Shown one piece after another: positions 1-33,219 of a DNA stretch of 64,000 nt; positions within the stretch are counted from its first letter, which is position 1; each line of letters begins with the position of its first letter. Location: the NCBI GenBank assembly GCA_025558095.1, contig JAIVFI010000011.1, positions 1 through 64,000 of the forward strand, written 5' to 3'. Position numbers and translations under genes: made by a program. Source of the DNA: Hyaloraphidium curvatum SAG 235-1 (taxonomy: Eukaryota; Fungi; Monoblepharomycota). The notes below the pieces were generated by a model. It was not told where the DNA came from and did no database searches. It saw only the letters and a program-made list of their open reading frames with translations.

Positions 1-153
1 GACGACGCGCCGTCGGTCCTTTGGCACACCGTTGAGGTCGATGAGGCAGTGGGGGACAGGCCCAATGAAGGCCGGCGTGTAGCCCCGACCGTTGGCGTGC
101 GGTTGCACCCGATCGATGAGCTTGGCGTAGTTGGTGGGCGCCGAGAAAGGCAT
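1..153 (-). CDS. 5' end of a hypothetical gene running off the window (MPFSAPTNYAKLIDRVQPH...)
   Basis: ATG at 153 in GCCATG context; frame is open to position 1 with GC3-rich codons; no family recognised. Confidence 0.4.
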   Translation of the reverse strand, partial: MPFSAPTNYAKLIDRVQPHANGRGYTPAFIGPVPHCLIDLNGVPKDRRRVV

Positions 154-1115
154 GGCAGAAGCCAGCTCCTCCCTGCGGAAAGAATCTCAGAACCCGTCCC
201 GGGAGACAGTCTCCCCCCCGAACGAATCTCTATCAAGCTAAGTCAAATTTCCATCGTATACTAACTCTACTTCGGGCCTATCGAGACCTGCGGCTTTGAA
301 CCGCTTGTGCGGCGGGTTAACGCTCTAGGCCCCGTTGACTCGGTCCGTCACACTGGGTGTAACGGGATTCCAGCCGTCACCCCGATTCGGATGCGCCGAA
401 GAGCAAACGCATCGCGTACGTCGGTCGTTTACCGGCTTGCCTGTGGGTTCCCGAAAAAGTCGGCCGGGCGGTAGGGAATCCCGCGCCCGACAGCTCCGAA
501 ACCAAACCTAGCCTTTCGGACCTTACACGCTACACTCAGGTACTTCGTACCGTTCGTACAACCCTCCGGATATAAAGATGTTAAGACAGGCGGCCCGTGC
601 CGCCACACTATGCTACGCGGGCCGGATGGTTCCACGGCCGACTTTCACCCGTAGGAGCAAGCTGGCCGCCTATCAACTTTGCACGGATCGTTTTTGCCGT
701 GAAACGTTGATTGGGAGGGAGATAGAGATGCTGGCGGCGCTGCTGGAGGTCATCGAGGGGAAAGGCGGCGGTTGGGGGGCTGGTTGGTGGGGGGAGCCCT
801 GCAACTCTACCCCTCCCTGCTAGCCAACTCTACAAACATCTCGCAGCGATGAGGGGGAGGGGGATAGACATGCAAGCCCCTCAGGGGGACGTCACAGAGA
901 ATCGCAAAAATAGCTCCTGAGAAAGCAATGCGTTTCAGGGAACGAGGCACTCGACAGCCGAACCGGGATGATTGCGATTTTGAACGGAATACACGGGTTG
1001 CAGCGCAATTGCGGATCGATGGTGCGCCCAGCAATGCATACCCAACATCAACAACTGCCGCCGCTTGCTCCCTGAAGCGGCGCTCGCCCCCCGCCACCAC
1101 CTGCTGCCTGCCGCC

Positions 1116-1345
1116 TGTCAGGAGCGCCCGGTCGTGGTCGCACGGCGACCGGCACAGCTCGAGGCCTGGCGTGGGCACGAGATCTCCGTAGGGCTTAACG
1201 ATATCTAGACATTGGAACTACATGACTGTTCTATCGGTTTATATAGTCCGGGCCGCGCAAGATGCCGCGTAAGCGGAGTTCGCGGGAACCCCGGTGAACC
1301 TTCTGGAACCTCCCAGAAGACCCGGCCCCTTGCGAGTCCCTGACA
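1116..1345 (-). repeat. 3' LTR
   Basis: Base-for-base identical to 2994-3223; TG...CA ends with 7-bp terminal inverted repeat. Confidence 0.97.
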
Positions 1346-1360
1346 TCATCTCCCTCCTTC
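1346..1360 (-). other. Polypurine tract (PPT)
   Basis: Minus strand GAAGGAGGGAGATGA directly abuts the 3' LTR. Confidence 0.85.
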
Positions 1361-1942
1361 GGCGCGCTCGTCCCGAGCGCGCAACTTGAGCCTCCCGACG
1401 CGCAAAGCTTGAGCGCGGCGGTGGCGGTGAAAACTTCGCGGTGTGGCAAGTGTCGTGGCAAAGCTTGACCGCGAACCTGAACATGGCGTGGCTCTTTGAG
1501 CATGGCAATGGCATAAACGATGAACCTTGACGTGGCTTGGCGTAAACGATGAACCTTGACGTGACTTGATGCATGGCAGGCGTGGGATCGGTCACACGAC
1601 GAGGGAGCCTGATCTCGGGCGTCGAATCCTGCTGGGGGTGGATGTAACCACAATCGATTGACGAGCCGATCCTAGGTGACCAGTGCTTGCTCGGGGGCGG
1701 CGAACCGATGAAAACGGGTCTTCTCAACACAGGGGTGTAGTACCGCAGCTCAATCGGTAATCGGTCCGAGAGCACCTGTGGCCGAGAGGGGTCGATGCGC
1801 GTCGGCTCAATGAGATAGATGCGATGGAGACGTGAAACATGAGACCATGAGACGTGAAGGCCGTGGTGCAGAGTCGGTGAGAGTGACGTTCGATGGTGAA
1901 ACCGTGAAGCAGGATGCGTGGAGATGCGTGGAGCGAGCAGGA

Positions 1943-2941
1943 TCACTTGGCAGGAGGCGGCGGGCGGGCGGAGCGGTCGTTGCATTCGGCCTGGCGGTGA
2001 CCCTCCTTGCCGCAGTAGAAGCAGAGTCCATTGATACGGCGGCGCGCACGCTCCTCATCAGAAAGAGGCCCGTGGCGTAGGCTCGCGATGTCCATGGGGA
2101 CGGGCCCGTCGGTGACGGCGGTCCCGGCCGAGGTGGCTGTCGCGTTCGTGGTCGTGGAAGCGGATGCCGGGAACGTGGTAGTCGAACGAGGGGGGATGCC
2201 GTGAGCAGGCCAGTAGCCCTGCTTCTCGAGACGGCGGCGGTGCAGCTCGTCGTCGACGTCGATGGCGATCTTGATGAGCTCGGAAAGCGTGGCGGGCTTG
2301 TCGCGAATCATGAGGTCCTCCACGGCGTCCTTGAGGCCCATGCGATACTGCGCCATAAGGGCGGCGTCATTATAGCCGGTCTTGGCGGCGAGAAGACGGA
2401 ATTGCGAGGTGTATGCTGAGGCTGAGCTGGTCTGGCGTAGCTCGCGCAGCTTGGCCTGGGCCTTTCCGGCCTCATCCGTCTCGCCGAAGTTGGTTTCGAG
2501 TTCGCTGATGAACTTGGCGTAGTTCGTGGTGATATCGGCGTCGTCCTCGACAGCGGAGAACCAGCTCAGGGCGGCCCCCGAGAGGTGGCTGGCGATGAAG
2601 GCGATGCGCTGACCGTCGGTGCTGTACATGCCGGGGTTTGCGTGGAAGTTGATCTTGATCTGGGTCATGAAGTCGCGGAGCTTGGAGCGGTTGCCATCGA
2701 ACTTCTCCGGGGCGGCAACCTTAATCCGGGGAAGGGCAGCTTCCGGCGGCGATGGGGGCAACTGCTCGCTCTGCCGGGTCCGAGTGGGCTGGCCCGGCGG
2801 CGGCGCGAAGCGGTGGAGTTCTTGGAGTTCTTGACGGAGGGCGTTGACGCTCCCAAGGAGCTCGCTGAACTGAGCGTCCTGGGTGGTGAACTTGGCGGCG
2901 AGGGCCTGAACGAGCCCGGGAATGTCCGTGGGGAGGTCCAT
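1943..2941 (-). CDS. gag: Retrotransposon Gag (332 aa; sushi/PEG10-like capsid plus CCHC zinc knuckle)
   Basis: PEKFDG..KLRDF, IASHLSGAALSWF, LRQTSSASAY..F, PVPMDI, EERARRRINGLCFYCGKEGHRQAEC; N-terminal coiled coil. Confidence 0.95.
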   Translation of the reverse strand: MDLPTDIPGLVQALAAKFTTQDAQFSELLGSVNALRQELQELHRFAPPPGQPTRTRQSEQLPPSPPEAALPRIKVAAPEKFDGNRSKLRDFMTQIKINFHANPGMYSTDGQRIAFIASHLSGAALSWFSAVEDDADITTNYAKFISELETNFGETDEAGKAQAKLRELRQTSSASAYTSQFRLLAAKTGYNDAALMAQYRMGLKDAVEDLMIRDKPATLSELIKIAIDVDDELHRRRLEKQGYWPAHGIPPRSTTTFPASASTTTNATATSAGTAVTDGPVPMDIASLRHGPLSDEERARRRINGLCFYCGKEGHRQAECNDRSARPPPPAK

Positions 2942-2980
2942 GGTCTACTCCTGGTCCGTCGTGGGCGACGGGGCGGGAGG

Positions 2981-2992
2981 AATGTCTAGATA
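2981..2992 (-). other. Primer-binding site, self-priming type
   Basis: Minus-strand TATCTAGACATT lies 1 nt after the 5' LTR; it is the exact complement of AATGTCTAGATA in the LTR (3091->3080) and has no TGG tRNA-type start. Confidence 0.85.
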
Positions 2993-2993
2993 A

Positions 2994-3223
2994 TGTCAGG
3001 AGCGCCCGGTCGTGGTCGCACGGCGACCGGCACAGCTCGAGGCCTGGCGTGGGCACGAGATCTCCGTAGGGCTTAACGATATCTAGACATTGGAACTACA
3101 TGACTGTTCTATCGGTTTATATAGTCCGGGCCGCGCAAGATGCCGCGTAAGCGGAGTTCGCGGGAACCCCGGTGAACCTTCTGGAACCTCCCAGAAGACC
3201 CGGCCCCTTGCGAGTCCCTGACA
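2994..3223 (-). repeat. 5' LTR
   Basis: Identical to 1116-1345; lies upstream of gag. Confidence 0.97.
3116..3123 (-). promoter_or_regulatory. LTR TATA box
   Basis: TATATAAA on the minus strand, 32 nt upstream of the PBS-complementary 12-mer (predicted transcription start). Confidence 0.75.
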
Positions 3224-3246
3224 CCGCCAGTCCGACCCCACGCATG

Positions 3247-5010
3247 TCAAACCCCGCCACATGCCGCCTCCCACCGTGCCTCCCACGCTCCCCCCGCTCC
3301 CACCCCCTCCTCCAGCGCCCGCCTGTGCATCGCCAGCATCACCCTCGCCTCGTCTGCCTCCCTCCCCCCGCGGCCCCCGGCGGCGCGCAGGTATCCCGCG
3401 TGCGCCGACGCGGCCAGGAGCAGACAGTGCTGCGCGAACGGCTTGGCGAGCACCTCGGGCGGGAGCATGGGGATCAGCCTCGTCGCTGCGAGCGCGTGCG
3501 CGTGGAGGGCGAGGAAGCCGGGGTCGGCGGGGGCCGAGGGGAGGAGGAGGAGGATGCGGGCGCCGTGGTGCACGAGTAGGGTGTAGGCTGTGAGGGCGAG
3601 AGGGGCGCCGCGGAGTTCGGGGGGAGGGGTGCCGTTGTCGACGAGGAGGCCAGGTGGGGGCAGCTCGGCGTACCAGGCGTCGAGGGCGGCGAGGAGGGGG
3701 GCGCGGTCGGCGAGGAGGGGGGCGCGGTCGGCGCCGGCTGCGGCACAGCGGGAGAAGAGGAGGAAGACGCGCACATGGTGGTGGGTTGGCGAAAAGTCTT
3801 CGTCCGGTCCCAGGGACGACTCGAGGGGGGAAGGCGGGGCGCGGAGCTCGGCGCCGGCCGCGTCAAGGGGCAGGTCGCGGGCGACGCGCGTCATGGCGGC
3901 GGCAAACTCGGCGTCGGTGCGCTGCACGGGCACCCAGCGGCTCTCCTCCTGGTGAAGCAGGGGAGGCCGGCCGTCTATGGCTGCCGCCTGCGCGTCAAAA
4001 ATCGCCAGACTCCACCAGGCACGTGCTGCGCGCTCCGCGACGACATCAGTACGCCCCGCGTAAAAGGAGCCGTCGGTCATGCATGCGACACGGGCGATGC
4101 GCACGGCCAGGGCGACGACGGGCCCAGAGGCGAGTGGTCCGTCGCCGCGAAGCGCCATGGCGACGCCCCCGAGGTGCAGGAGTGCCGACACGACGGCGAC
4201 GGCGAGTTCCCGATAAGAGAGCCACGCCCGAACGGCCGGGGGGGCGATCCACGCGGGCTCACCGACCCCGGGAATGGGCGGAGCGGCGGGAGGGCCCGCC
4301 AGCACGGCCTGCGCAGCGGGGAGCAAGGCATCCTGGGCTCGGGCGGCCATCACGGTAAGAAGGGGGCCGCGCCGGGAACCCAGGGCCGCGCGTAGGGGGC
4401 CGTCCGTCCAAGCCGTCCACAGCAGAATCGACCAGGCCAAAAAGTCGGGGACGGCCCGCGCCGCAAGCTCGCGGCGGAGTTCAGCGGCGACCGTCAAGGG
4501 AAGAGCGGCGTATGTGGAAGCGAGATAGCGCGACATGACGAGGTCGGGCGGCGCCAGCTCGAGGTCGACCGAGGAAGGAGGCGAGAGCGGTAGCGGGGGG
4601 GAAACCGGCTGCGGCCACGCCGGGTTGGGCGCGCCGAATTCTGCCGGCCACGCGAGTGCCTGGGCTAGCATTGGTGTCGCCCACGCCGGCGGTGGAGGCG
4701 GCGAGGGCGCGGCAATCTCGGCGGCCGGCGGGGAGGACGGGCTCGCGGGGCTCGCGGGTGACTCGCTGTCCTCCTTCTTGGCGCCGCGGCGTTTGCCCGG
4801 CCGCCTCCCCCGCCGTTTCGGGGGAAGGAACACGCAGCCCTCGGCGGGGAGGCCATTACGCTCGCAGCGGAGGCAGGCGGCTCCGGGAATCGGCGAGGGG
4901 TCGCAGCGCCGCCGGGCAGCGGTGCAGGCCGTGCAGCTCGCCCGGACCGGGACGGCCAGCCCGCTGCCGACGACGGCGCCGGGCGGCAACGCGGCGGGCG
5001 CTGAAGGCAT
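3247..5010 (-). CDS. Zn(II)2Cys6 transcription factor with fungal middle-homology domain
   Basis: CTACTAARRRC...CLRCERNGLPAEGC cluster, basic NLS, RAARAWWSLAIFD motif; start taken at MPSAPAA. Confidence 0.85.
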   Translation of the reverse strand: MPSAPAALPPGAVVGSGLAVPVRASCTACTAARRRCDPSPIPGAACLRCERNGLPAEGCVFLPPKRRGRRPGKRRGAKKEDSESPASPASPSSPPAAEIAAPSPPPPPAWATPMLAQALAWPAEFGAPNPAWPQPVSPPLPLSPPSSVDLELAPPDLVMSRYLASTYAALPLTVAAELRRELAARAVPDFLAWSILLWTAWTDGPLRAALGSRRGPLLTVMAARAQDALLPAAQAVLAGPPAAPPIPGVGEPAWIAPPAVRAWLSYRELAVAVVSALLHLGGVAMALRGDGPLASGPVVALAVRIARVACMTDGSFYAGRTDVVAERAARAWWSLAIFDAQAAAIDGRPPLLHQEESRWVPVQRTDAEFAAAMTRVARDLPLDAAGAELRAPPSPLESSLGPDEDFSPTHHHVRVFLLFSRCAAAGADRAPLLADRAPLLAALDAWYAELPPPGLLVDNGTPPPELRGAPLALTAYTLLVHHGARILLLLPSAPADPGFLALHAHALAATRLIPMLPPEVLAKPFAQHCLLLAASAHAGYLRAAGGRGGREADEARVMLAMHRRALEEGVGAGGAWEARWEAACGGV

Positions 5011-6075
5011 GGTCGTGGCAGCCGTGGCGGAGGTGACTCGCTGCGGCGGCCGGCGGCCGATCGATCGAGGGATCAGGCGCCGAGCACGCTTCCGCCACAT
5101 CCCCGCGAGAGCAATCCGGCTGCATGGACCCTGGATCCATGGAGAGATGGCGAACAAAGCGATCTTCAAACGGGTGCGTGGACTGGTATGCGTGACGGCG
5201 GCGAGCGCATTCTTGGGGGACAGCTGCGCACCGCCGCCAGGTCGGCCGCCGGGTGGGGTCGGTCGGGAAGACAGCCTCGCTGCCCACTCCGACAGGTAAG
5301 CAGAGAGAGCGCCTCTCACTTCATCTCCTTTGCGCGGTTTTGCTCCCGCGGGCCCGAATCCGTCCATGCAAAGCAGGTCGTCGCGGCGGAGCAACTTTTA
5401 CCTGCGGAGATTTCGCAAGCAACACCGCCCCTGCCCTGTGGCGGGCTTCCGATCGCCCGAGGGCCTGGGGCGGTTGGCTGGCGGGCCCGATTGTGCTCAC
5501 GCTGGACACGTACCAGCACATCCCGGCCCGACGCTTCGAGGCCGATATCTCGAGCAATATTCCGCTGCGATGCGCTGCTGCCTGCCCCGGATCGTCGCGT
5601 TCCTGCTCATCGGATCCATCCGGCGTTGGAATCCATGTCCTCGCATCCCGGCCGCCTCCATATACGTTTGTCGCTATGCGCACCGCCCCCCATGGCCACC
5701 GCCGCGCGCGGCAGTGGGCCCCACTCACCTCCCCGACCAACCGTCGCCCCGGAGGCCCCCAAACCTGCGACCCTGCACCGCGCTCAACGTGCGCGCAGTC
5801 CACCAAGCGCCACTCGACGCGCGCGCCGTCCCTTTTGGTTGCCAGGCGGAAGTGCGGTTCTCGAGGTCCCAGCAGGTCTAGCCGCCGGCCAGCATCCCGG
5901 GTCTGACGCGAACGTACGACAGGACGGAGGGTAGCGACACGGCGCAGAGCGCCCGATTCGCACACGAATTCGTAGCTTGGGCGGGTCTGTGGTCGCACCT
6001 GTGCTGCACGCCGTCCGAGGGAGGTAGGTCTATGCCGCTGGTGAATATGGCTGCCAGACATGGATGCCTCCTGTT

Positions 6076-7964
6076 TCACAGTCCGACCCTCCACCCACCA
6101 AGCCTGTGCATGCACAGCGCCCTCATCAGCAGCACCGCGCCCTCCTCGGCCCCCTGCCCCCGCACCGCGTCCCCACGCCCAACGCCTTCCCCGAAATCTG
6201 TCGGATCGGCCTCGGTCCCGGAAAATACCGCCGATCCGAGGCGGTACAGGGCGGCGTCCCATGCTCCACCGGTGCGGGAGAGGAGCTCGAGCGCGGCGAG
6301 GCAGGACGAGGCGGAGCGACGGACGAGGTTGGAGTCTACGAGGGGGGGCTGCGCGGAGCGAAGGGCGAGGCGCCGCGCTGTGGGTGCGTGCAGCCGTAGA
6401 AGGGAAAATGCGAGGGGTCCGGCGCCGTCGAGGGCCTCGGCGGCGCAGTCCAGCTCGAGCAGGGAAGCCAGCACGGCGGCGTGCGCGTACGCGGCGTCCT
6501 CCAGGCCATGGGGAAGCCCCTTCAAAGTCAAGTCGAGGTCGGCCGACGAGGGAATCCAGGGGCCCTGGCCCTTCCACCCGGCCGGCGGCGGCGGCAGCAT
6601 CGAGATCGCCGAGTGCAACTCGAGTCGCATGGCAAGCAGGGAGCACATCCGTCGCGCCACGTTGGCCGCGTAGCCTGTGGGTAGGCCGTGCAATTGCAGC
6701 GCCGAGATCAGATCCCCGACGGGGGCGAGTCCCTCGGCGACGGTCCTTGCCGGCTCAGAAAGCACCGAATGCAGGTCCGCCAGGTCGCCATCCAGCGCCG
6801 CCTTCGCCCTCCCCAGCTCACCGTGCCCGGCGCCGACTTTCCTCGGGGACCGTAGCCCCGCCTTCCTGCACACCCGCAGCAGCCCTGCCACCCTGGCGGC
6901 CAGCACCCCGTGCGCGGCGTCGAACAGCGCGGGGGAGCGGAGCAGCCGGCTGCCGAGGGATGCGAGCATCCGCGCGCGCAGGGGGTCGGCGCGGTCGAGG
7001 CGCATCCAGTCCACCGCGTCCGAGAGGGGCTCTCCCGGCGGGAAGGCAGTGAAGTCGAAGATGGGGTCGGTGGCGGAGGTCAAGATCGAGGCGGGCGGCA
7101 GGACCAAGCGCCCGGCGAGGTCCGGCACTCCGCCGCCTTCGCTCCACGGATCCGAAGACAGCTCCAGCGATATCCTCAGCAGCGAGAACGCCAGCCTCTC
7201 CCCCGTCCACCGCTCGATCCACCCCTCCCTCGACCCCGATCTACCCCTCTCCCCCCCCGCCGGCGCGGCAAACGACCCCTCCCCCTGCACGATCCCCGCC
7301 CTCCCCGCCGCCTCCCCCGCGGCATGCACGAGACCTTCGGCAAGCGACCGAAGCCCGCACCTGCACGCCCAGGTCGCGAGGGCGAGCAACGCCGCGACGG
7401 TTTCCTGCGACGCCTCGGGCGCCGCGAGGGCCGATTCGAGTTCCCCGCGCGCGAGATCGAGTAGGGGAGGGTCCCATGTCCGGAAATTGGGCACGCCGGG
7501 GATCGGAGGGCCGGGGAGACGCGGGGCGGCGAGGAGGACCGAAGCGAGGAGCAGAGGCGGGGCGTCCCTTGCGAGGAGGCGGGAGGGGTGCAGCGAGGGC
7601 AGGCAGTGCTCCGTGCGGAGGGAGAAGGCGGAGATGCACGTTGTGACCACCTCCGCCGGCGGCAGATCCGGCGGGCTCGGTGTGCGCGGGGGGCGGACGC
7701 GCCGCGACCCCCTGCTCTCGGCCGAGGGGCTCCGTCCGAGGGTGGGAAGGTCCAGGCTGAACGACACCGTGCGCTTCATCTTGGCGGGGCGTTCGGCTAG
7801 CGTCGAGACCGAAGACGACGAGGAGGAGGTGTCGGAGAAGGATGTGGAAGAGGTGGAGCCAGAGTCCGCGGATACGAAGGGCGGCTCGTCATGGAGGGAC
7901 TGCGGCGGAGGTGCCGGCGTCAGCGGCACACCGGCGGAAAGGGCAATAACAAGCCTCGAACCAT
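6076..7964 (-). CDS. Fungal TF middle-homology-domain-like protein lacking a Zn cluster
   Basis: ATG-only exon (7964-7962), then a 62-nt intron (GTTCGA...CTGAC...CAG, 7900-7961) in frame with SLHDEPP; LPSLHPSRLL..PLLLASV and WIERWTGERL segments resemble the regulatory domain. Confidence 0.6.
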
Positions 7965-8877
7965 GAAATGAACGGCCACGTCCAGGGCGAACGGAGCGCC
8001 CCCTGTTTCCGCCATCGCGGAGGTGGCGGCGCCACTCGGGAACCGCGGCCGTCAGCGCCCGCCGCGAGGCCTCGGCCGCAGAAGGAGCCGGAAGGCCCGG
8101 TGCGTGACGCTCGGCGCGGGGGGCCCAGCAAACAGCGGCACGCGGCGTCCGCACGCTGCGCACCGATAAAGGCCCGGGCCGGACCCGATTCGGGTCGCGG
8201 GCGTCGGCCGTCTCCCGCGCTGCGGAGGGCAGCCGTGCGCTTCCGGGGCCCGGCCGACGGGAGCTGAGGCGACGGCGCAAGCCCCTCGCTCTGTCGAAAG
8301 GGAGGGTGCGGTGCTGCCGGCGGAAATCGTGGCCGTTCCCGTAGACGATTGACTTTGAGGGTCGGAGGGCTGGAACTCCGCTCGGGTCTGGACGGGCATC
8401 GCCACCGGCTCCACACGCGCCGCGATGCCCCTTGCGGGTCGGAAATGAACACGACGAGTTGCAGGTCGGAGTCCGGGTCCGTTTCGCGAAGATTGCGTCG
8501 CCATTAGGCCGCTGGGTTTCGGGAACCGCCGCAAGAACGTCATGGATTAGACTTTGGCGGGGACCGCAGCTGGTTCCCGCTCGGAGCTGGCAGGTTTCCT
8601 CTTCCTGCGATGCAGCGGTACGTCACGAGAGTGTACGGTCGTTTTAGAACAGCCTGGAGTCGGCGGTGTCGTCGGCCCTGATGACTCGGGTGTCCAGTCG
8701 CCATCGGGCCCCAAGCTCCCGCTGTTCCCACTGACAGTTTGCGACTTGCAGTAATATCTTGAGCGCATCATCCTTACTTTTGCTGCTCGACACAGTATTC
8801 CGAGCCAGCAAGCTTTGCGGGGCCGCGCAACCGCGCCATCACTGCCAGAGGGAAGCACCTCAACACGAGCCCGCACG

Positions 8878-9439
8878 ATGGACCGCCTCCTCCCAGTCGC
8901 CGAGGCGCTCGACAAAGCCGCTCCCTCCCTTGCCAGCTTCCTACTCGGAGTTATCTTCATCGACGTAATCTACGACCAGAAGGCGCTCCCGTCCGAGCGG
9001 AGGCAGGCCTATTATCAGACGAACTCCCGCGCCGAAGGGCTGCCGTCGTACTACCTCGCCGCGCTGCGGATCGCCGGTACCGGTGCGGTCGCCGGCCCCC
9101 TGGCGGCGGCGGCGCTGCGGGCCGCGACGGGGGTGTATGCCGGGGAGGGGCGGAAGCGCGGCGCGGCGGAGGCGCTGGGCGTCGGTGGGTCTTTCCGACG
9201 CGTCGAAGGCGCCAGACGGAATAATTGACGCGTCGCGACGGGCAGTTATGGCCTTGATTGGGGTGGCCAGGTACGACGCGCTGTTCGTGCCCAACCACGT
9301 GGCCGTCGTCGCCGGGGGTGCGGATGGCGGGGCGGAGGGGCTCGAGCGGAGGCTGGCGAAGATGGCAGAGGGGCACAGGTGGATCGGTGGGGGCCTGCTG
9401 GCGCTGCTGGCGTCCAAGGTCGCCGCGTCGCTGCTGTGA
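8878..9439 (+). CDS. Small multi-pass membrane protein (2 exons)
   Basis: Hydrophobic segments in two ORFs joined by a GTGGGT...CAG intron (~9185-9245). Confidence 0.65.
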
Positions 9440-9718
9440 GGGAGGAGGGCGGACGGGTGCTGGCCGACCGAGTCTGAGGCCGGGATTCGACTGAGCGGAC
9501 AATCTATGGGCGCTTCATTGATTGTATCGTGGTAGCCTCGGCGGACCGACGTGGTTGGATGGACGGCGAGGAGCTCACCTGACTCGGCCGCGGGCGCCGC
9601 TCCCATCCCCCGGCTTCGGGGCAACTCCGTGCCGCCCTCCCCGCGCATCGCCGGGCGGCCGCCGCCGCCCGCCCATCCCGCGGACCTCCAGCAAGTGCGC
9701 CGACCACTCTGTCCCGCG

Positions 9719-11550
9719 ATGGAGGCGTCGCCGTGCCACCCCCTTGCGGGGAGCTCTCCGCACGGCGTGTGCCCGACGTGCCGCATCCCGCTGCGCCACC
9801 ACGGCCGGCGGTCCTCCGCGTCGTCGCTGTGGTTCGAGCCCGTCCCGCTGGCCGACCTCGCGCCGCCCGCGCGCCCCGCGTCGGCCGCGCCGCCCGCCCC
9901 GCCGCTGCCGCGCCCGCCCGCAGACGCCTTCGACATCCCGGCCGCGCTGCCCGTCGAGCTGGCGGCGCTCGTGTTCCGCTGGCTGCTGCCGACGGGCGGG
10001 CGCGGCGTGCGGGCACTGCTCGAGTGCGGCCTGGTCTGCCGCTGCTGGTACAGGAGGTCGCGCGACGAGGGCGTCTGGCGCGAAGCCTGGTGGGCTACCT
10101 CGTGCGCATCTGCGGGAATGCAGCTAATTCGGTCTGCTGTCGAACCCTCCGCTACGCCTTCTTTCTCGGCTCTCCGTGGGCCCGATCCGACTTCCATCCT
10201 GCGACTTCGTCCACGGCAGCCGACGGCTGTACCTCACCACCGACCTCACCCTCGCGCCCTTCCTGCTCTCCCCTCCCTTCCCCACGTCTTACCTCGCCCG
10301 TCAGCACCCCGACCTCCCCCTGCCCTCCCTCGCCCTCCTCCAGCACTACTCCCGCCGCCCCTTCCCCCACCCCCTCGCGCACTACGCCGCCCTCGCCCCG
10401 CACGTCCGCTCCCTCCTCACCGAGCGTGACGCGCGGCGCATCGTGCGCGCCCGGATCTGGGCCGGCTGGACGCCCGACGCCTGCCCCCCGACCCTCCTGG
10501 ACCCGTCCCCCGCCACGGACCCGGACGGCCCGGTGTCCCCGGCCACCCTGCACCTGCTCCACGCCACCCACCCCGCGTACCTCTCCCCCCTCCCGCCCTT
10601 CCTCTCCCCCTCGTTCCCCTCCCTCTGGCTCCTCTCCTACGCCGCGCACCTGCGCTCCCTGTCCATGCCCTTCCTGCGCCGCGCGGACGTCTCCAAGCTG
10701 CAGTGGCGCTTCTCGTTCCGCAACCCCGTGTGGTGGCGCCTCGGCGAGATGGAAGGCAGGAGCTGGGCGGTGTTTGGTGCCGAGGGCGGGTACAGGTCGG
10801 GCATGTTCGAGGAGGACGTGGAGCTGCGGTGGCGGTTCCTTGGGGACGACGAGGGGGAGTACGGCGAGGACGAGGCGGGCGGCGGCGAGCCCCGTTCGTG
10901 GCTTCCCTCGTTCGATCCCGCCGCCCCGGCGCAGAAGCGCAGGCCCGGGCCGTGGGGGACAGACCACCACGACCCGCATTTCGCGAGGGCACCCGGGGTC
11001 CGCGAACCGGCGGGGTTTTGGGCCGGTTCCCGCGCCGCCCGCGCGGTGCTCGCGCTGGGGAGCCTGCTGCTGACGGGCTCGGCGGATCCGGGGGCGGAGC
11101 GGGGGCCGAGGAGGAGGTGGGCGGGGAGGAGGAGGCGGTGGGTGCAGGTGGAGAGGTACCCGCCGCTTGAGGTGAGCAGGACGACGGAGGGGGGGTGGAG
11201 GATGGCCAACGCGTACGGTGGGTGGCACGCCGGCGCAGGATCCGAACTACGGTTCTGATCACGTATGCTCGATACCACCCACAGTCATCTTCGACTCGGT
11301 TGACACCAGCAAGCTCCTCCCTCTACCTCCCCCGCCCCCACCCCCTCCCGCCCCCGCGACGCCCCCAACGCCATCCCTCCTCCAACCCGCCCCCGACCCG
11401 CTCCTCGCCGCGGACCTCCCGCCCCCTGCGATCCCGCGGCCGGAGCCCAAGTACGTGTTCTGGGACGCGGACGAGGAGGGGGAGTGGCACCGGCTGGAGA
11501 GGATCGGGAGGGGGGAGGAGGGCGAGGCCGGGGTGGGGGTCGAGGCGTGA
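9719..11550 (+). CDS. F-box protein (multi-exon)
   Basis: LPVELAALVFRWL...LLECGLVCRCWYRRSRDEGVWR F-box motif; continues in ORF 10176-11258 and a final Pro-rich exon. Confidence 0.7.
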
Positions 11551-11737
11551 GGATCGCGAGGGCCGGACGGAGTTTCGGGGATGGGCGTTACAGGGGTAGG
11601 GTTCGTCTTTTGCTTTGCACGTGTAGGAGGGGGAAAGTAGTCGGATTCGCAGGGGACTTCAAGGCATGCCGGCGGAGCCCGAAGCAGGCACCCTCGCTCG
11701 TAGACGCTCCTGCCGAAGCTCCCGCAGCCCACCAACG

Positions 11738-12942
11738 ATGGCAGACGCGGCCAAACCCCTCAATTCACCGAATCCGAATGGCTCGCGATCGCCCAGTCGC
11801 CCCCCGCCGCCCCCGGCTAGGCGGGCGACCTCTTCGGCGGCGGCGACGCCGAGTTCCCCCGCCCGCCGCTGGACCGCGGCACGCTGCTTCGGGAGGTCGG
11901 CAGGCGCAGCAAGTTCCTGCTTTTCGAACTGCGCGTCAACCTCTTTGTCGGGCCGTGGGCGTCGAGGATCGCGGTCCGGGCCACGCTGTGGGCCGTGCCC
12001 TCGACCGTGGTGGTGCTATCCGCGCTCGCGTTCAACGACCTGCCCATGTCCTGCGACGACGTGCGCCGGCTCGCTGGTTGAAAGGGCTCCCCTGCAGTGT
12101 TTAGTCGGTGCCTTCGCAAGGGGCTTTCCCCTTACGGCGTGCTGCTTCTTCCTCCTCGCCACCCCGTTCCTGGTAAACTCCGGACCCTTTTGGAAGTCCT
12201 GGTGGGCCCTTGTGGGGGCACTTGCCATTCTCGGCGCCCTGGACCACGTGCCCATCAACATCGCGGGGTGTTTCTCGACCAACGCCGCGCTTCTGGGCCT
12301 GTCTCTGCGGATCCAGCGCCGCGCCATGTTCCTCGCACTCCGGAGCTTTCTGGATGGGTTCGACGCCGCGATCTTTGCGGGAGCCCCCGCCGAGGTGCAG
12401 GACCCCAGCCTCTACACCACCCTGCACTACCGCCTCGCCGCGGCGTGGGAGCGCCGCGTCCCGTTCCTCATCTCGGGGAGAACCATGCTCGCCTTCTCCT
12501 TCGCCGCCAACGCCGTCCCTCTCGTGGCCAACATCGCGGCGGGCGGGTGCGTGCCCGCCTATGTCGTGCTCGGCTTCGCCTTCATCCTGGCCATCGTCGT
12601 CTGGGACCTCGTCAACGTGGCGCTCTCCAACGAGCAGCTCGAGCGGATCACGGAGCTGTACCGGCAGGCACAAACCGAGATCCGCGACGCGCTGGTCCGC
12701 GCGCGGCGCGTCCCTCCAGACCCAGCGCGCGCGCCGCTGCTCGAGGCGCTGCGGGAGCACAACCGGCTGCTGGATTCGTTCAGGGAGGTCGCTGGGTTCC
12801 GCGGCAAGTTGCTCGGTTTCGTGGTGGACTTGGCGTGCTGCGCACGTTCCTCGCGACCGCCTTCACGATCGCCGTCGGGCTGTGGTCCGTCCTGCGCGGG
12901 TCGGTGTTCTTCACCCTGCATTCCATCTGCCCGACGCGATGA
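11738..12942 (+). pseudogene. Multi-TM protein resembling 7TM ion-channel/GRL/DUF3537 proteins, frame-disrupted as assembled
   Basis: Several TM helices; C-terminal GKLLGFVVD/GVLRTFLATAFTIAVGLWSVL; 37-nt intron 12061-12097; frame breaks in 11760-11825 and at ~12830. Confidence 0.55.
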
Positions 12943-31222: not shown

Positions 31223-33219
31223 TCAGTAATCGAAAAGGTCGCCCGACTTGAACTCCATGCCATGCAGTAGGAACCTCTTGGGCCTGTTCCACAGCCACCC
31301 CCCCGCAATCCCCTTGCCCACGAACGGGAACGCGAGCAGGTTGATGACGCCCTGCACGGGGAGCAGCAAGGCGCACAGGATCATCACGGGGTCGGGAAGC
31401 AGCGACCCGAACACGGGGAACCGCTCCATCACGGCGCGGAAGGCCGCGGGGTCCGCCCCGGGGCCGCGCTGCCGGTACCAGGCGGGCCAGAGGGGGTAGC
31501 AGAGGTACTTGACGAGGAGACCGCGGTACATGACGAGCTGGGCGGCGAAGGCGGCAAGCGAGGCGAGGAACAGGGCCCGAGAGGGGCGCCGGCGGAGCCT
31601 CACCACGATGCCGGCGGCGAAGAGGGCGGCAGAGAGGCGGCCTGCCCACAGAATCGGCGAGGGGAGGCGCGGGGAGCAGCCGACGTCCCGGGCGACGGCG
31701 TCGGCAAAGGCGACGTAGTCGACGAGCGAGTCGAGGTGCGGGCTCACGCTGTAGTGCGCGCGCTCGTCGGCGGCCTCGGGAGCGATGCGGGAGCGCCAGT
31801 CGGGAGGGAGTGAGAGATCGCCGGAAAGCAGGCCAGCGATCTGCCTCGAGAGGAGCTCGGCGAGCTGCGGGATCCCTCCCTGGAATGCGTTTAACCGGGG
31901 GTGAGACGGACGATGAACGGGCGGTCCGTCGCAAACAAGACGCACCTGATGAGGCCTCGCGTACCCGACGAAGAACAGGTGCCCCGGCCCTTCCTTTTCC
32001 GCCGGATGGTCCAACGGCGGGAAGCAGTGCCTGTACCACCGGCGCGGGTTGACCACGAGCTCCGGGCAGCTCTTCTCGAGGAACGGCATCCTCGCGCCGA
32101 ACCCCGTGCAGGCGATGATGGCGTCGAATTCCACTGCGGTGCCGTCGTCGAAAGTCACGGATTTGCCGTCGCACTTGATCGACTTGCTGATTCGGTGCTT
32201 GATCTTGCCGGCGGCGACCCGTTCCACGAAGCGGGCGTTCTTGGTCGCGTAGCCGCTCTACGGGACGGGAAATGGCAATAGATTCGGAGAATGAAACGGT
32301 CGGGGCGATGAGCATCGGTCGGGAGAACCAGCTCGGCAAAGACCCGCACCTGATCGGCCTGCCACGGGGTGTCTTTGCAGTGCTCCAGGCACCAATCGGC
32401 GAGCAGCTCCCCGCGCATCAGCACCCTCCAGATGAAATGCCTCGGCAGCGAGTACAGCATCGCCGACAGGTCGTTGTGCAGCCTGCTCGTCGTCATGGTC
32501 TCGAGGAACGCGTTGATCGGCAGCCCCTTCCCCGCCTGCTGCAGCCTCAGCCCGTCCGCCTCGGTCATACCCGGGGTGAGGAACCGCGGGCCGACGAGCG
32601 GCACCCTCCGCGTCCAGAGGGTGCAGTCGCCGCCGGCCTCCTGGGCGTCGGTCGCGATGTCCGCCGCCGACTCGCCCGCGCCGACGACGAGCACGCGCAT
32701 CTTCTCGCGGGTGATGCGCTGCTTGAGCTCCGCGGAGAACTGAGTCGAGTGGAACACGTCGCCGCCGAAGCCGAAGTCCGGCACCTTGGGGACCTGGTTC
32801 GCGCCCGTGCAGACGACCAGCGCGTCGGCGTCGAATGTCGCGGGGCCGTCGGGGGTGGAGAGGGAAATCACCCAGCCGCCGTCGGCGCGGCGCGCGGCGT
32901 CGGCGACCTCGGTGCCGTATTGGATGTGCTCCTTCAGCCCGAACTTGTCCGCGTAGGAATCCAGGTACTCCACGTATTCCTCCTTCGACGTGTACGCCAA
33001 GTTGCCCGGCGGCGGATGGTCCGAATAAGCCATGAAGTAATTGCTGATCGTGAGGTGCAGCGGGCCGTAGGTCGACGGCGCCGCGAAGGTGCCGCCGAGC
33101 CCCGCGCCGCGCTCGAAGCACGTCGCCGCGTGGCCCGCCGCGCGGAGCTCCTTGAGCGCGACGAGGCCGCACGGGCCCGCGCCGACCACGGCCACGGTCG
33201 CCGAGTGCTGGGGAGCCAT
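31223..33219 (-). CDS. Flavin-containing monooxygenase (FMO) with C-terminal TM segments
   Basis: GAGPCGL, FGGDVFHSTQF (FxGxxxHxxxF), GAGESAAD, ATKN, IIACTGF, FFVGYARPHQGGIP; two introns. Confidence 0.92.

Follow-up and report, generated by a model that had tools for sequence, protein, structure and literature searches.

Gag-only LTR retroelements have been described under the term TR-GAG, and are recognized by LTRs, a PBS, a polypurine tract (PPT), a 5-bp duplication, a length of 4 kb or less, two or more copies, and a Gag-like ORF only (PMC4350172, Chaparro et al. 2015). The retrieved papers using this term all concern plants, in line with the initial annotation of the present locus, and our literature searches retrieved neither a fungal gag-only LTR element or fungal TR-GAG nor any report on nuclear transposons of Hyaloraphidium curvatum. 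Parasitism of a complete partner by a non-autonomous derivative is exemplified by BARE-2 of barley (PMC4350172). Self-priming is an established mechanism in Tf1 and has been put forward for Tj1 as well as the Tf1/sushi group (PMC4600332; PMC6317226).

In this study, a stretch of 64,000 nucleotides at the start of contig JAIVFI010000011.1 of H. curvatum (GCA_025558095.1), hereafter the window, was analyzed. The element described herein is very probably a non-autonomous LTR retrotransposon with gag as its sole gene and a TR-GAG architecture, which arose from a Tf1/sushi-type chromovirus and borrows Pol in trans. The minus strand is the coding direction of the whole element, and the LTR at 2994-3223 is therefore the 5' LTR. 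The features, all on the minus strand, are as follows.

3224-3228, minus strand: target-site duplication, the copy lying upstream when the element is read in its own direction (plus-strand CCGCC, read directly; same as 1111-1115)
2994-3223, minus strand: 5' LTR, 230 bp, with TGTCAG...CTGACA ends (100% match to 1116-1345)
3116-3123, minus strand: TATA box TATATAAA, located in the 5' LTR U3 (read directly; the self-primer site follows 32 nt downstream)
3080-3091, minus strand: predicted transcript 5' end and self-primer, whose 12 nt complement the PBS
2981-2992, minus strand: predicted PBS of the self-priming type, 1 nt past the 5' LTR (complement of 3080-3091, RNA fold, covariation)
1943-2941, minus strand: gag, intact ORF of 332 codons plus stop (Pfam, PDB match, model, fold search)
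1346-1942, minus strand: 3' internal region, 597 bp, without recognizable coding content (Pfam, tblastn, Rfam)
1346-1380, minus strand: PPT (1346-1360) and about 20 nt upstream of it (similarity to the relative L026)
1116-1345, minus strand: 3' LTR, 230 bp (100% match to 2994-3223)
1111-1115, minus strand: target-site duplication, downstream copy (read directly)
1242-2054, minus strand: open frame of 271 codons, -1 relative to gag, most likely not a gene

Both LTRs are bounded by TG...CA, and the unit measures 2108 bp from LTR to LTR, under the 4-kb ceiling of TR-GAG elements. The PBS and the purine-rich tract at 1346-1360 stand beside the 5' and 3' LTRs, respectively. Direct reading and alignment bore out the identical 230-bp LTRs, the perfect CCGCC duplication, and the PPT noticed in the initial annotation. 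The 3' region additionally contains short tandem duplications at 1371-1414, 1509-1568, 1838-1853, and 1913-1933. Taken as sequence and structure, the unit appears to carry every feature published for TR-GAG elements; its mobilization by a partner is what we infer.

A second copy of the 2108-bp unit was found on contig JAIVFI010000002.1 of the same assembly (L025:9719-11826). The two copies are 99.7% identical and colinear over 2108 bp, with six mismatches and no gaps, and all four of their LTRs are identical. The second copy is flanked by its own 5-bp duplication, AGACC, in place of the CCGCC of the window copy, and the surrounding sequences are unrelated, which indicates that the gag-only unit itself was reverse-transcribed and integrated at least twice. 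The element is young and mobile, with two or more insertions in the H. curvatum genome; its copy number is given as at least two, the minimum for TR-GAG elements. The earlier proposal that the 2.1-kb unit itself is the mobile form thus gained support: the suggested search for additional 2.1-kb copies, with distinct duplications and a shared gag/3' junction, yielded one more, and the opposing outcome, a single copy, did not occur. Four of the differences between the copies fall within gag, three non-synonymous and one synonymous, a number at which dN/dS is not meaningful and which gives no sign of purifying selection in the gag-only phase.

At both copies, the existing gene models are truncated, fragmentary hypothetical proteins, one of them a 137-aa fragment model of this Gag, and a neighboring host gene model extends into an LTR. 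The consequence for annotation is that both copies currently stand under such truncated models. A 23-nt likeness of window positions 115-137 to gag was judged a coincidence, as it sits in the start of an unrelated gene.

The minus-strand ORF at 2941..1943 runs without interruption for 332 aa to a C-terminal PPPAK and is unbroken in both copies. Pfam searches detected Ty3_capsid (1.8e-19) and Retrotrans_gag (3.3e-14), together with a zf-CCHC match at aa 306-320 (nt 1982-2026) whose value of 5e-4 fell narrowly short of the cut-off; the ORF and these matches confirm the earlier description of an intact Gag ending in PPPAK after the zinc knuckle. The protein matched the sequence of PDB entry 6r22 (Ty3 Gag) at 4.6e-08, and retained all invariant columns of an alignment with nine relatives, and its exact look-up among known proteins returned no record. 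In the AlphaFold model (mean pLDDT 85.5, and 96-98 across about residues 70-240), a long N-terminal helix leads into a capsid domain of two lobes (aa 69-242), which a disordered linker connects to the CCHC knuckle. A fold search with this model matched the capsid domains of Ty3, dArc, and PEG10, with target-normalized TM-scores of 0.86-0.91 for the PEG10 CA-CTD and 0.60-0.65 for the Ty3 capsid. The predicted model and Pfam together display the two-lobed alpha-helical capsid followed by a CCHC knuckle that is typical of Ty3/gypsy Gag. The Ty1 p22 CA-CTD was also among the weak structural neighbors, which reflects only the common capsid fold. With its Pfam and PDB matches, its structural model, and intact frames in both copies, the Gag looks sound.

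The PBS at 2981-2992 is a perfect 12-nt complement of 3080-3091, the predicted transcript start, and none of 20000 LTR shuffles reached a 12-nt complement. In the RNA fold (z = -3.28), nt 1-12 pair with the PBS. In the relatives L001, L003, L005, L008, L010, L011, L012/L021, L020, and L026, the arm pairs vary in sequence and remain complementary, and the TATA box/self-primer layout of the window element is found in relatives as well. The pair thus covaries across ten relatives. The PBS is not of the tRNA type and would serve Tf1-like self-priming. The hallmark of the Tf1/sushi group, a PBS that complements the 5' end of its own transcript, is present here at the level of sequence only.

No trace of pol was detected in the element. 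Pfam searches of 1346-1942 in all frames on both strands revealed no protease, RT, RNase H, or integrase, and tblastn of the pol of seven relatives against the same region gave noise only; decayed pol within this region, the other outcome named beforehand as adverse, was thus rejected. An Rfam search of the element gave no family and only a chance-level match. What remains is a Gag-like ORF without similarity to those four pol domains, as in TR-GAG elements. The annotated interval of about 600 bp between the gag stop and the PPT, devoid of pol motifs, was accordingly verified, the 597 bp including the PPT itself. The pol of Tf1/sushi chromoviruses (protease, RT, RNase H, and integrase with chromodomain) is absent, and the element is therefore a derivative of that group and not an autonomous member.

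The closest relatives show 35-46% Gag identity, and all of those with sufficient readable downstream DNA are complete chromoviruses except L015. The closest one found, L026 (46% Gag identity; metagenome ERZ28614139 scaffold_14772), is a 4.9-kb autonomous element encoding a 1153-aa RT-RNaseH-integrase-SH3-chromodomain pol behind a GGGAAAC slippery site; the other complete elements are L001, L003, L005, L010, L011, L016, L027, and L028. RT, RNase H, integrase, and chromodomain were detected in L001, L003, and L026, and among these three a protease match, weak and sub-threshold, was obtained in L001 and L003 only. When the gag/pol junctions of six elements (the window element, L026, L001, L003, L027, and L028) were compared, all five relatives had pol in the -1 frame, preceded by an in-phase heptamer of the slippery type (GGGAAAC in L026 and L001), whereas the last 200 nt of the window gag contain no in-phase X_XXY_YYZ heptamer. 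The initial annotation had likewise noticed no GGGAAAC-type site at the gag end, and the window element appears to have lost the heptamer that the checked relatives carry.

The window element and L026 share LTR ends, TATA context (the first ~43 nt and the TATA region of the 5' LTR resemble the L026 LTR), the self-primer and PBS at the same positions, and the PPT region; L026 differs in having its own GGGAAAC site and pol. Within the 3' region, only positions 1346-1380 resemble any relative at the DNA level, with 86% over 36 nt to L026:4810-4845, the final stretch ahead of the 3' LTR in L026 and a coding one there, since the L026 pol ORF was called through to 4862. These comparisons point to descent from a pol-bearing Tf1/sushi-type chromovirus (Ty3/gypsy) with the cis signals retained. 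Two candidates for further gag-only units, L027 and L028, were rejected, because protease or pol follows directly after gag, as was L013, a degraded copy. L015 is an unrelated 2.0-kb gag-bearing unit without pol from another data set, and a recurrent origin of gag-only units is hinted at by it.

A mobile unit without pol that has inserted at least twice logically requires that Pol be supplied in trans. L026 is not the actual helper, because its Gag identity is too distant and it belongs to another organism. No pol was found in the window and L025 together (85 kb of the H. curvatum genome), the best 120 pol relatives in a word search with the L026 pol included no protein from H. curvatum, and the ten long or fused Gag relatives that were traced came from salamander, fish, Microbotryum, and metagenomes, none from H. 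curvatum. An exact-pattern scan of viral and metagenome contigs for the LTR/PBS junction yielded nothing, and a Gag-based scan of the viral contigs no relative. In the following cycle, transcription, particle formation, Pol provided in trans, and the helper itself are all inferred. The 5' LTR promoter (TATA at 3123-3116, predicted start near 3091) would direct an RNA of ~1.9 kb coding for Gag only, around which Gag particles would assemble, while protease, reverse transcriptase/RNase H, and integrase would be supplied in trans by a complete element of the same lineage. RNA nt 1-12 would fold back on the PBS and be cleaved by the helper RNase H to give the minus-strand primer, as in Tf1, the PPT may act as the plus-strand primer, and the helper integrase would insert the TG...CA ends at a 5-bp staggered cut.

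Several other explanations were weighed against this one. That the locus is a dead remnant, left by a one-off in-place internal deletion of a full-length chromovirus, would accord with its clear derivation from a full-length ancestor and with the full-length state of all but one of the relatives outside H. curvatum with enough readable sequence; however, the second copy shares its junctions exactly, shows no indels, and sits in unrelated sequence with a separate 5-bp duplication, which implies that the deleted form itself went through reverse transcription and integration, and makes such a remnant very unlikely. An assembly collapse or mis-join that stripped pol from a normal element might be suspected from the position of the window copy only 1.1 kb from the contig end, but in the middle of a 1.3-Mb contig the assembly recovered the 2108-bp structure a second time, independently and with six point differences, and the slippery site, which should have survived in any collapsed full-length copy, is missing from the gag end; an artifact of this kind is extremely improbable. 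The identical LTRs, the duplications, and the two loci also set the element apart from a domesticated gag gene of the PEG10/Arc/RTL type, fixed at a single locus without LTRs or duplication. A bicistronic element, in which a further, novel protein would come from the 271-codon -1 frame (2054..1242), possibly as a frameshifted fusion to Gag, was considered because this frame stays open in both copies, has the register that pol occupies in the relatives, and shares 112 nt with the end of gag. Its length nevertheless lies within chance for this composition (5% of dinucleotide shuffles reach it, p about 0.05), it lacks a slippery heptamer, a Pfam match, and any homologue in a word search, and it extends into the 3' LTR; the frame was rejected as a gene, and the bicistronic reading is highly improbable.

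A different possibility accepts the mobility as described and places the main effect in Gag, which would act as a decoy, limiting helper copy number through co-assembly or competition with helper Gag. Ty1 p22, Fv1, and enJS56A1 are the analogues for such a decoy. In both copies, the Gag is unbroken and its predicted fold is good, and Ty1 p22 is a structural neighbor, weakly and only through the capsid fold; on the other hand, with three non-synonymous changes against one synonymous, the copies are too young for intact ORFs to reveal selection, and a decoy as the main effect seems unlikely. It is likewise unlikely that the element, rather than hitch-hiking passively, is a selected parasite or regulator whose Gag would co-assemble with helper particles and set helper copy number in the manner of Ty1 p22, or that it persists where its autonomous partner is gone. 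The preferred reading thus remains a mobile gag-only unit with Pol borrowed in trans.

The case shows that the TR-GAG architecture also emerged in an early-diverging fungus, its probable source being a chromovirus of the Tf1/sushi type with self-priming. The two near-identical young copies with intact Gag and all cis signals constitute clean material, by which three questions become testable: whether a non-autonomous element profits from its own capsid around its own RNA, whether helper RNase H can cleave a foreign self-primer, and whether surplus Gag is an aid or a restraint for the helper.

Like the plant TR-GAG elements (PMC4350172), the present element combines LTRs, a PBS, a PPT, a 5-bp duplication, a length below 4 kb, at least two copies, and a lone Gag ORF with presumed trans mobilization; it differs from them in its host, an early-diverging fungus (Monoblepharomycota), in its apparently self-priming rather than tRNA-type PBS, in its likely Tf1/sushi-type parentage, and in being documented by two copies. 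With LARD and TRIM it shares the retention of LTR, PBS, and PPT and the dependence on a helper, but those elements have no ORF (PMC4350172), whereas the present one retains a complete Gag. With the Tf1/sushi group (Tf1 and Tj1 of fission yeasts; sushi-ichi of fish) it has in common the Ty3-type capsid Gag and the self-complementary PBS, and its relatives have a chromodomain integrase and, in the five checked, express pol by predicted -1 frameshifting at slippery heptamers; unlike that group, it lacks any pol. BARE-2, in turn, has kept pol and is missing a working gag, and the present element, with gag and without pol, is its mirror image.

The element was read on the minus strand and, because this is its coding strand, the direct repeats at 2994-3223 and 1116-1345 were assigned as the 5' and 3' LTRs, respectively. 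As listed below, the identical 230-bp LTRs and the CCGCC duplication reported in the initial annotation were confirmed; both LTRs started with TGTCAG and finished with CTGACA.

Features of the element in the window
1111-1115 and 3224-3228, read directly: target-site duplication CCGCC, flanking both LTRs
1116-1345, minus strand: 3' LTR, 230-bp direct repeat, 100% identical to 2994-3223
1346-1942, minus strand: 3' internal region, 597 bp, gag stop to 3' LTR
2941..1943, minus strand: gag ORF, 332 residues, uninterrupted
2992-2981, minus strand: predicted primer-binding site (PBS), 12 nt, starting one base past the LTR, perfect complement of 3091-3080
2994-3223, minus strand: 5' LTR, 230-bp direct repeat, 100% identical to 1116-1345
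3091-3080, minus strand: predicted self-primer arm, 12 nt inside the LTR, 32 nt downstream of the TATATAAA box

An exhaustive protein search returned a fragmentary gene model of 137 aa whose sequence is exactly that of Gag residues 196-332. Its locus covers positions 1-12356 of JAIVFI010000011.1 (GCA_025558095.1), which places the window at the start of this contig, and its cluster included KAI9033186.1, a hypothetical protein of Hyaloraphidium curvatum (Monoblepharomycota) on contig JAIVFI010000002.1. A locus on that contig (L025) held a further copy:

L025:9719-11826 (JAIVFI010000002.1): second copy of the whole unit, 2108 bp LTR to LTR, 6 mismatches against the window copy, no gap

Neither of its LTRs differed from those of the window copy, its Gag was intact, and it carried its own 5-bp duplication, AGACC, within unrelated flanks; of the multiple 2.1-kb copies with different duplications that the initial annotation had proposed to look for, two are thus documented. 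This second colinear copy with its own duplication ruled out both an internal deletion in place and an assembly collapse. The gag-only unit was demonstrated to have integrated independently twice and, since the two copies are colinear with separate duplications, it was the gag-only RNA that underwent reverse transcription and integration. As LTR-to-LTR differences were zero within each copy, both are, judging from their LTR sequences, young. The copies differed in gag by H43R, N191D, E208K and one synonymous change, and outside gag at two positions, both in the 3' region; the ratio of 3 non-synonymous to 1 synonymous changes equals the neutral expectation and is uninformative either way on selection. 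Only two gene models of the family occurred in the protein collection, which weakly suggests a low copy number. The public annotation gives both gag genes as truncated/spliced hypothetical proteins (1943-2356, 137 aa, in the window; 10001-10999, 220 aa, at L025), not as the 332-aa Gag.

In the public record covering the start of the window's contig (L024), the neighboring gene model at L024:7347-9274 (window 3083-5010, minus strand) ends at 3083 within the 5' LTR, and its last part is therefore LTR-derived. A long ORF (3247..5394, minus strand) stops 20 bp short of the target-site duplication, placing the insertion at the extreme 3' end of a host gene. The second copy lies near another mobile element, since a gene with a Helitron_like_N domain (L025:6057-7427) is located about 2.3 kb away. 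Elsewhere in the window, an 86-nt tRNA-Gly(TCC) call (31390-31475, minus strand), longer than a plain tRNA, may hold an intron, and a gene start at 1-153 (minus strand) is interrupted by the contig end; the 23-nt likeness of the latter to gag 2507-2529 was dismissed as a coincidence due to a short shared peptide.

The open gag ORF and Pfam capsid matches verified the uninterrupted 332-aa Gag described initially: Ty3_capsid (1.8e-19), Retrotrans_gag (3.3e-14) and also DUF4939 were detected, and the CCHC knuckle scored slightly below the cut-off (5e-4). An exact look-up found no record of the 332-aa sequence, the best match in a word search was 41% identical, and Ty3 Gag (PDB 6r22) matched residues 63-325 by sequence. 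In an alignment with nine relatives, all invariant columns were retained. A structure model built from 60 relatives (mean pLDDT 85.5; 96-98 over about residues 70-240) predicted a long helix at the N terminus, followed by a two-lobed helical capsid domain and a disordered linker leading to the knuckle; in a fold search, this model matched the capsids of dArc, PEG10, Ty3 and PNMA2, with a target-normalised TM-score of 0.86-0.91 for the PEG10 C-terminal lobe.

Pfam searches of 1346-1942 in all frames on both strands (E up to 10) detected no protease, RT, RNase H or integrase, and tblastn queries with pol from seven related elements, at the same E limit, produced scattered noise only, which bore out the proposed absence of pol between gag and the 3' LTR. 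Rfam yielded no family for the element. Short tandem duplications occur at a few places in the region. In the -1 register, a frame that overlaps the end of gag stays open for 271 codons and continues into the LTR; its length, reached in about 5% of shuffles, is within chance for the composition, and with neither a Pfam match nor a homologue found, it was rejected as a gene and taken as non-coding.

Gag relatives showed 24-46% identity. In every related locus with enough readable downstream DNA, pol directly followed gag, except in L015 and the degraded L013. The pol of the three elements scanned for domains (L001, L003 and L026) comprised RT, RNase H, integrase, an SH3 domain and a chromodomain, identifying them as chromoviruses. 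At the gag/pol junctions of five relatives, pol was open in the -1 frame, and a canonical in-phase slippery heptamer preceded the gag stop by 20-40 nt:

L026:1203, GGGAAAC
L001:5040, GGGAAAC
L003:1093, TTTAAAA
L027:1907, CCCAAAC
L028:1012, GGGTTTT

These junction sequences point to programmed -1 frameshifting in the clade of autonomous relatives. In the element, gag stops 12 residues past the knuckle with no in-phase slippery heptamer in its last 200 nt, in line with the early stop and lack of a GGGAAAC-type site noted initially. The closest relative, L026, a complete 4.9-kb metagenome element with 46% Gag identity, resembled it at the DNA level over the initial 43 nt of the LTR, around the TATA box and at the LTR end, and by 86% over the 36 nt directly before the 3' LTR, polypurine tract (PPT) included, a stretch that in L026 belongs to the final part of the pol ORF. 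Because of this likeness at both ends and the lack of pol and heptamer, the element has the appearance of an L026-type chromovirus in which the span from just past the knuckle up to about 35 nt short of the 3' LTR was exchanged for about 560 bp of other DNA. Descent from complete chromoviruses, with pol and the frameshift site lost and all cis signals kept, was demonstrated.

Among the relatives, L015:1-2199 (JAABUT010035184.1) has repeated ends (1-164 = 2036-2199, 99.4%) delimiting a 2035-bp unit. This unit encodes a Gag of about 328 aa that shares 29% identity with the one in the window, includes some 1.05 kb lacking pol, and has an antisense ORF (1492..620, 291 aa) bearing a CX2CX6CX8CX2CX6C motif with no Pfam hit; it may be an independent gag-only unit. 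In a group of related metagenome loci, gag is preceded at a distance of about 0.8 kb by an RT fragment corresponding to pol residues about 337-607 (L012:3089-3886, L017:3278-4093, similarly in L018-L023); loci of this kind may have arisen through deletion or by one copy nesting in another.

The sequence following the 5' LTR was unlike a tRNA-type PBS. For the 12-nt complement at this position, none of 20000 LTR shuffles gave one as long, and in the predicted fold of RNA starting at 3091 (-57.5 kcal/mol, z = -3.28), the first 12 nt paired with the PBS. The same layout, namely a TATA box followed after about 30-35 nt by the first arm, then the LTR end and, 0-2 nt further on, the complementary arm, was present in L001, L003, L005, L008, L010, L011, L012/L021, L020 and L026, with arm sequences varying and complementarity kept. 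Such self-priming, in which the element's RNase H cuts the RNA 5' end to give the primer, is established for Tf1, and Tj1 and the Tf1/sushi group have been proposed to use it as well (PMC4600332; PMC6317226).

In the cycle we propose, the element would be transcribed from its LTR, its RNA translated into Gag and packaged, and protease, RT/RNase H and integrase supplied by a related complete element; because the element is gag-only, this helper must also perform self-primer cleavage, its RNase H presumably cutting the RNA 5' end. No helper was found in a pol search of the window and L025, nor any H. curvatum protein among the best 120 matches of a word search with L026 pol.

TR-GAGs were selected for LTRs, a PBS and a PPT, a length of ≤4 kb, ≥2 copies, Gag similarity and no similarity to protease, integrase, RT or RNase H, and their insertion sites showed a 5-bp duplication (Chaparro et al., 2015, PMC4350172); the element displays every one of these features, including the duplication. 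The literature searched, whose coverage was incomplete and leaves absence unproven, held nothing relevant on fungal LTR elements of gag-only or non-autonomous gag-bearing type, and the papers in it that use the term TR-GAG concern plants throughout. The element combines the TR-GAG architecture with a fungal host and with derivation from a chromovirus of the self-priming Tf1/sushi type. Since the searches for pol showed it to be absent, the element is no autonomous member of the Tf1/sushi group, whose autonomous members carry pol; its arm/PBS arrangement, known here from sequence and predicted fold, is of the kind described for Tf1 and this group.
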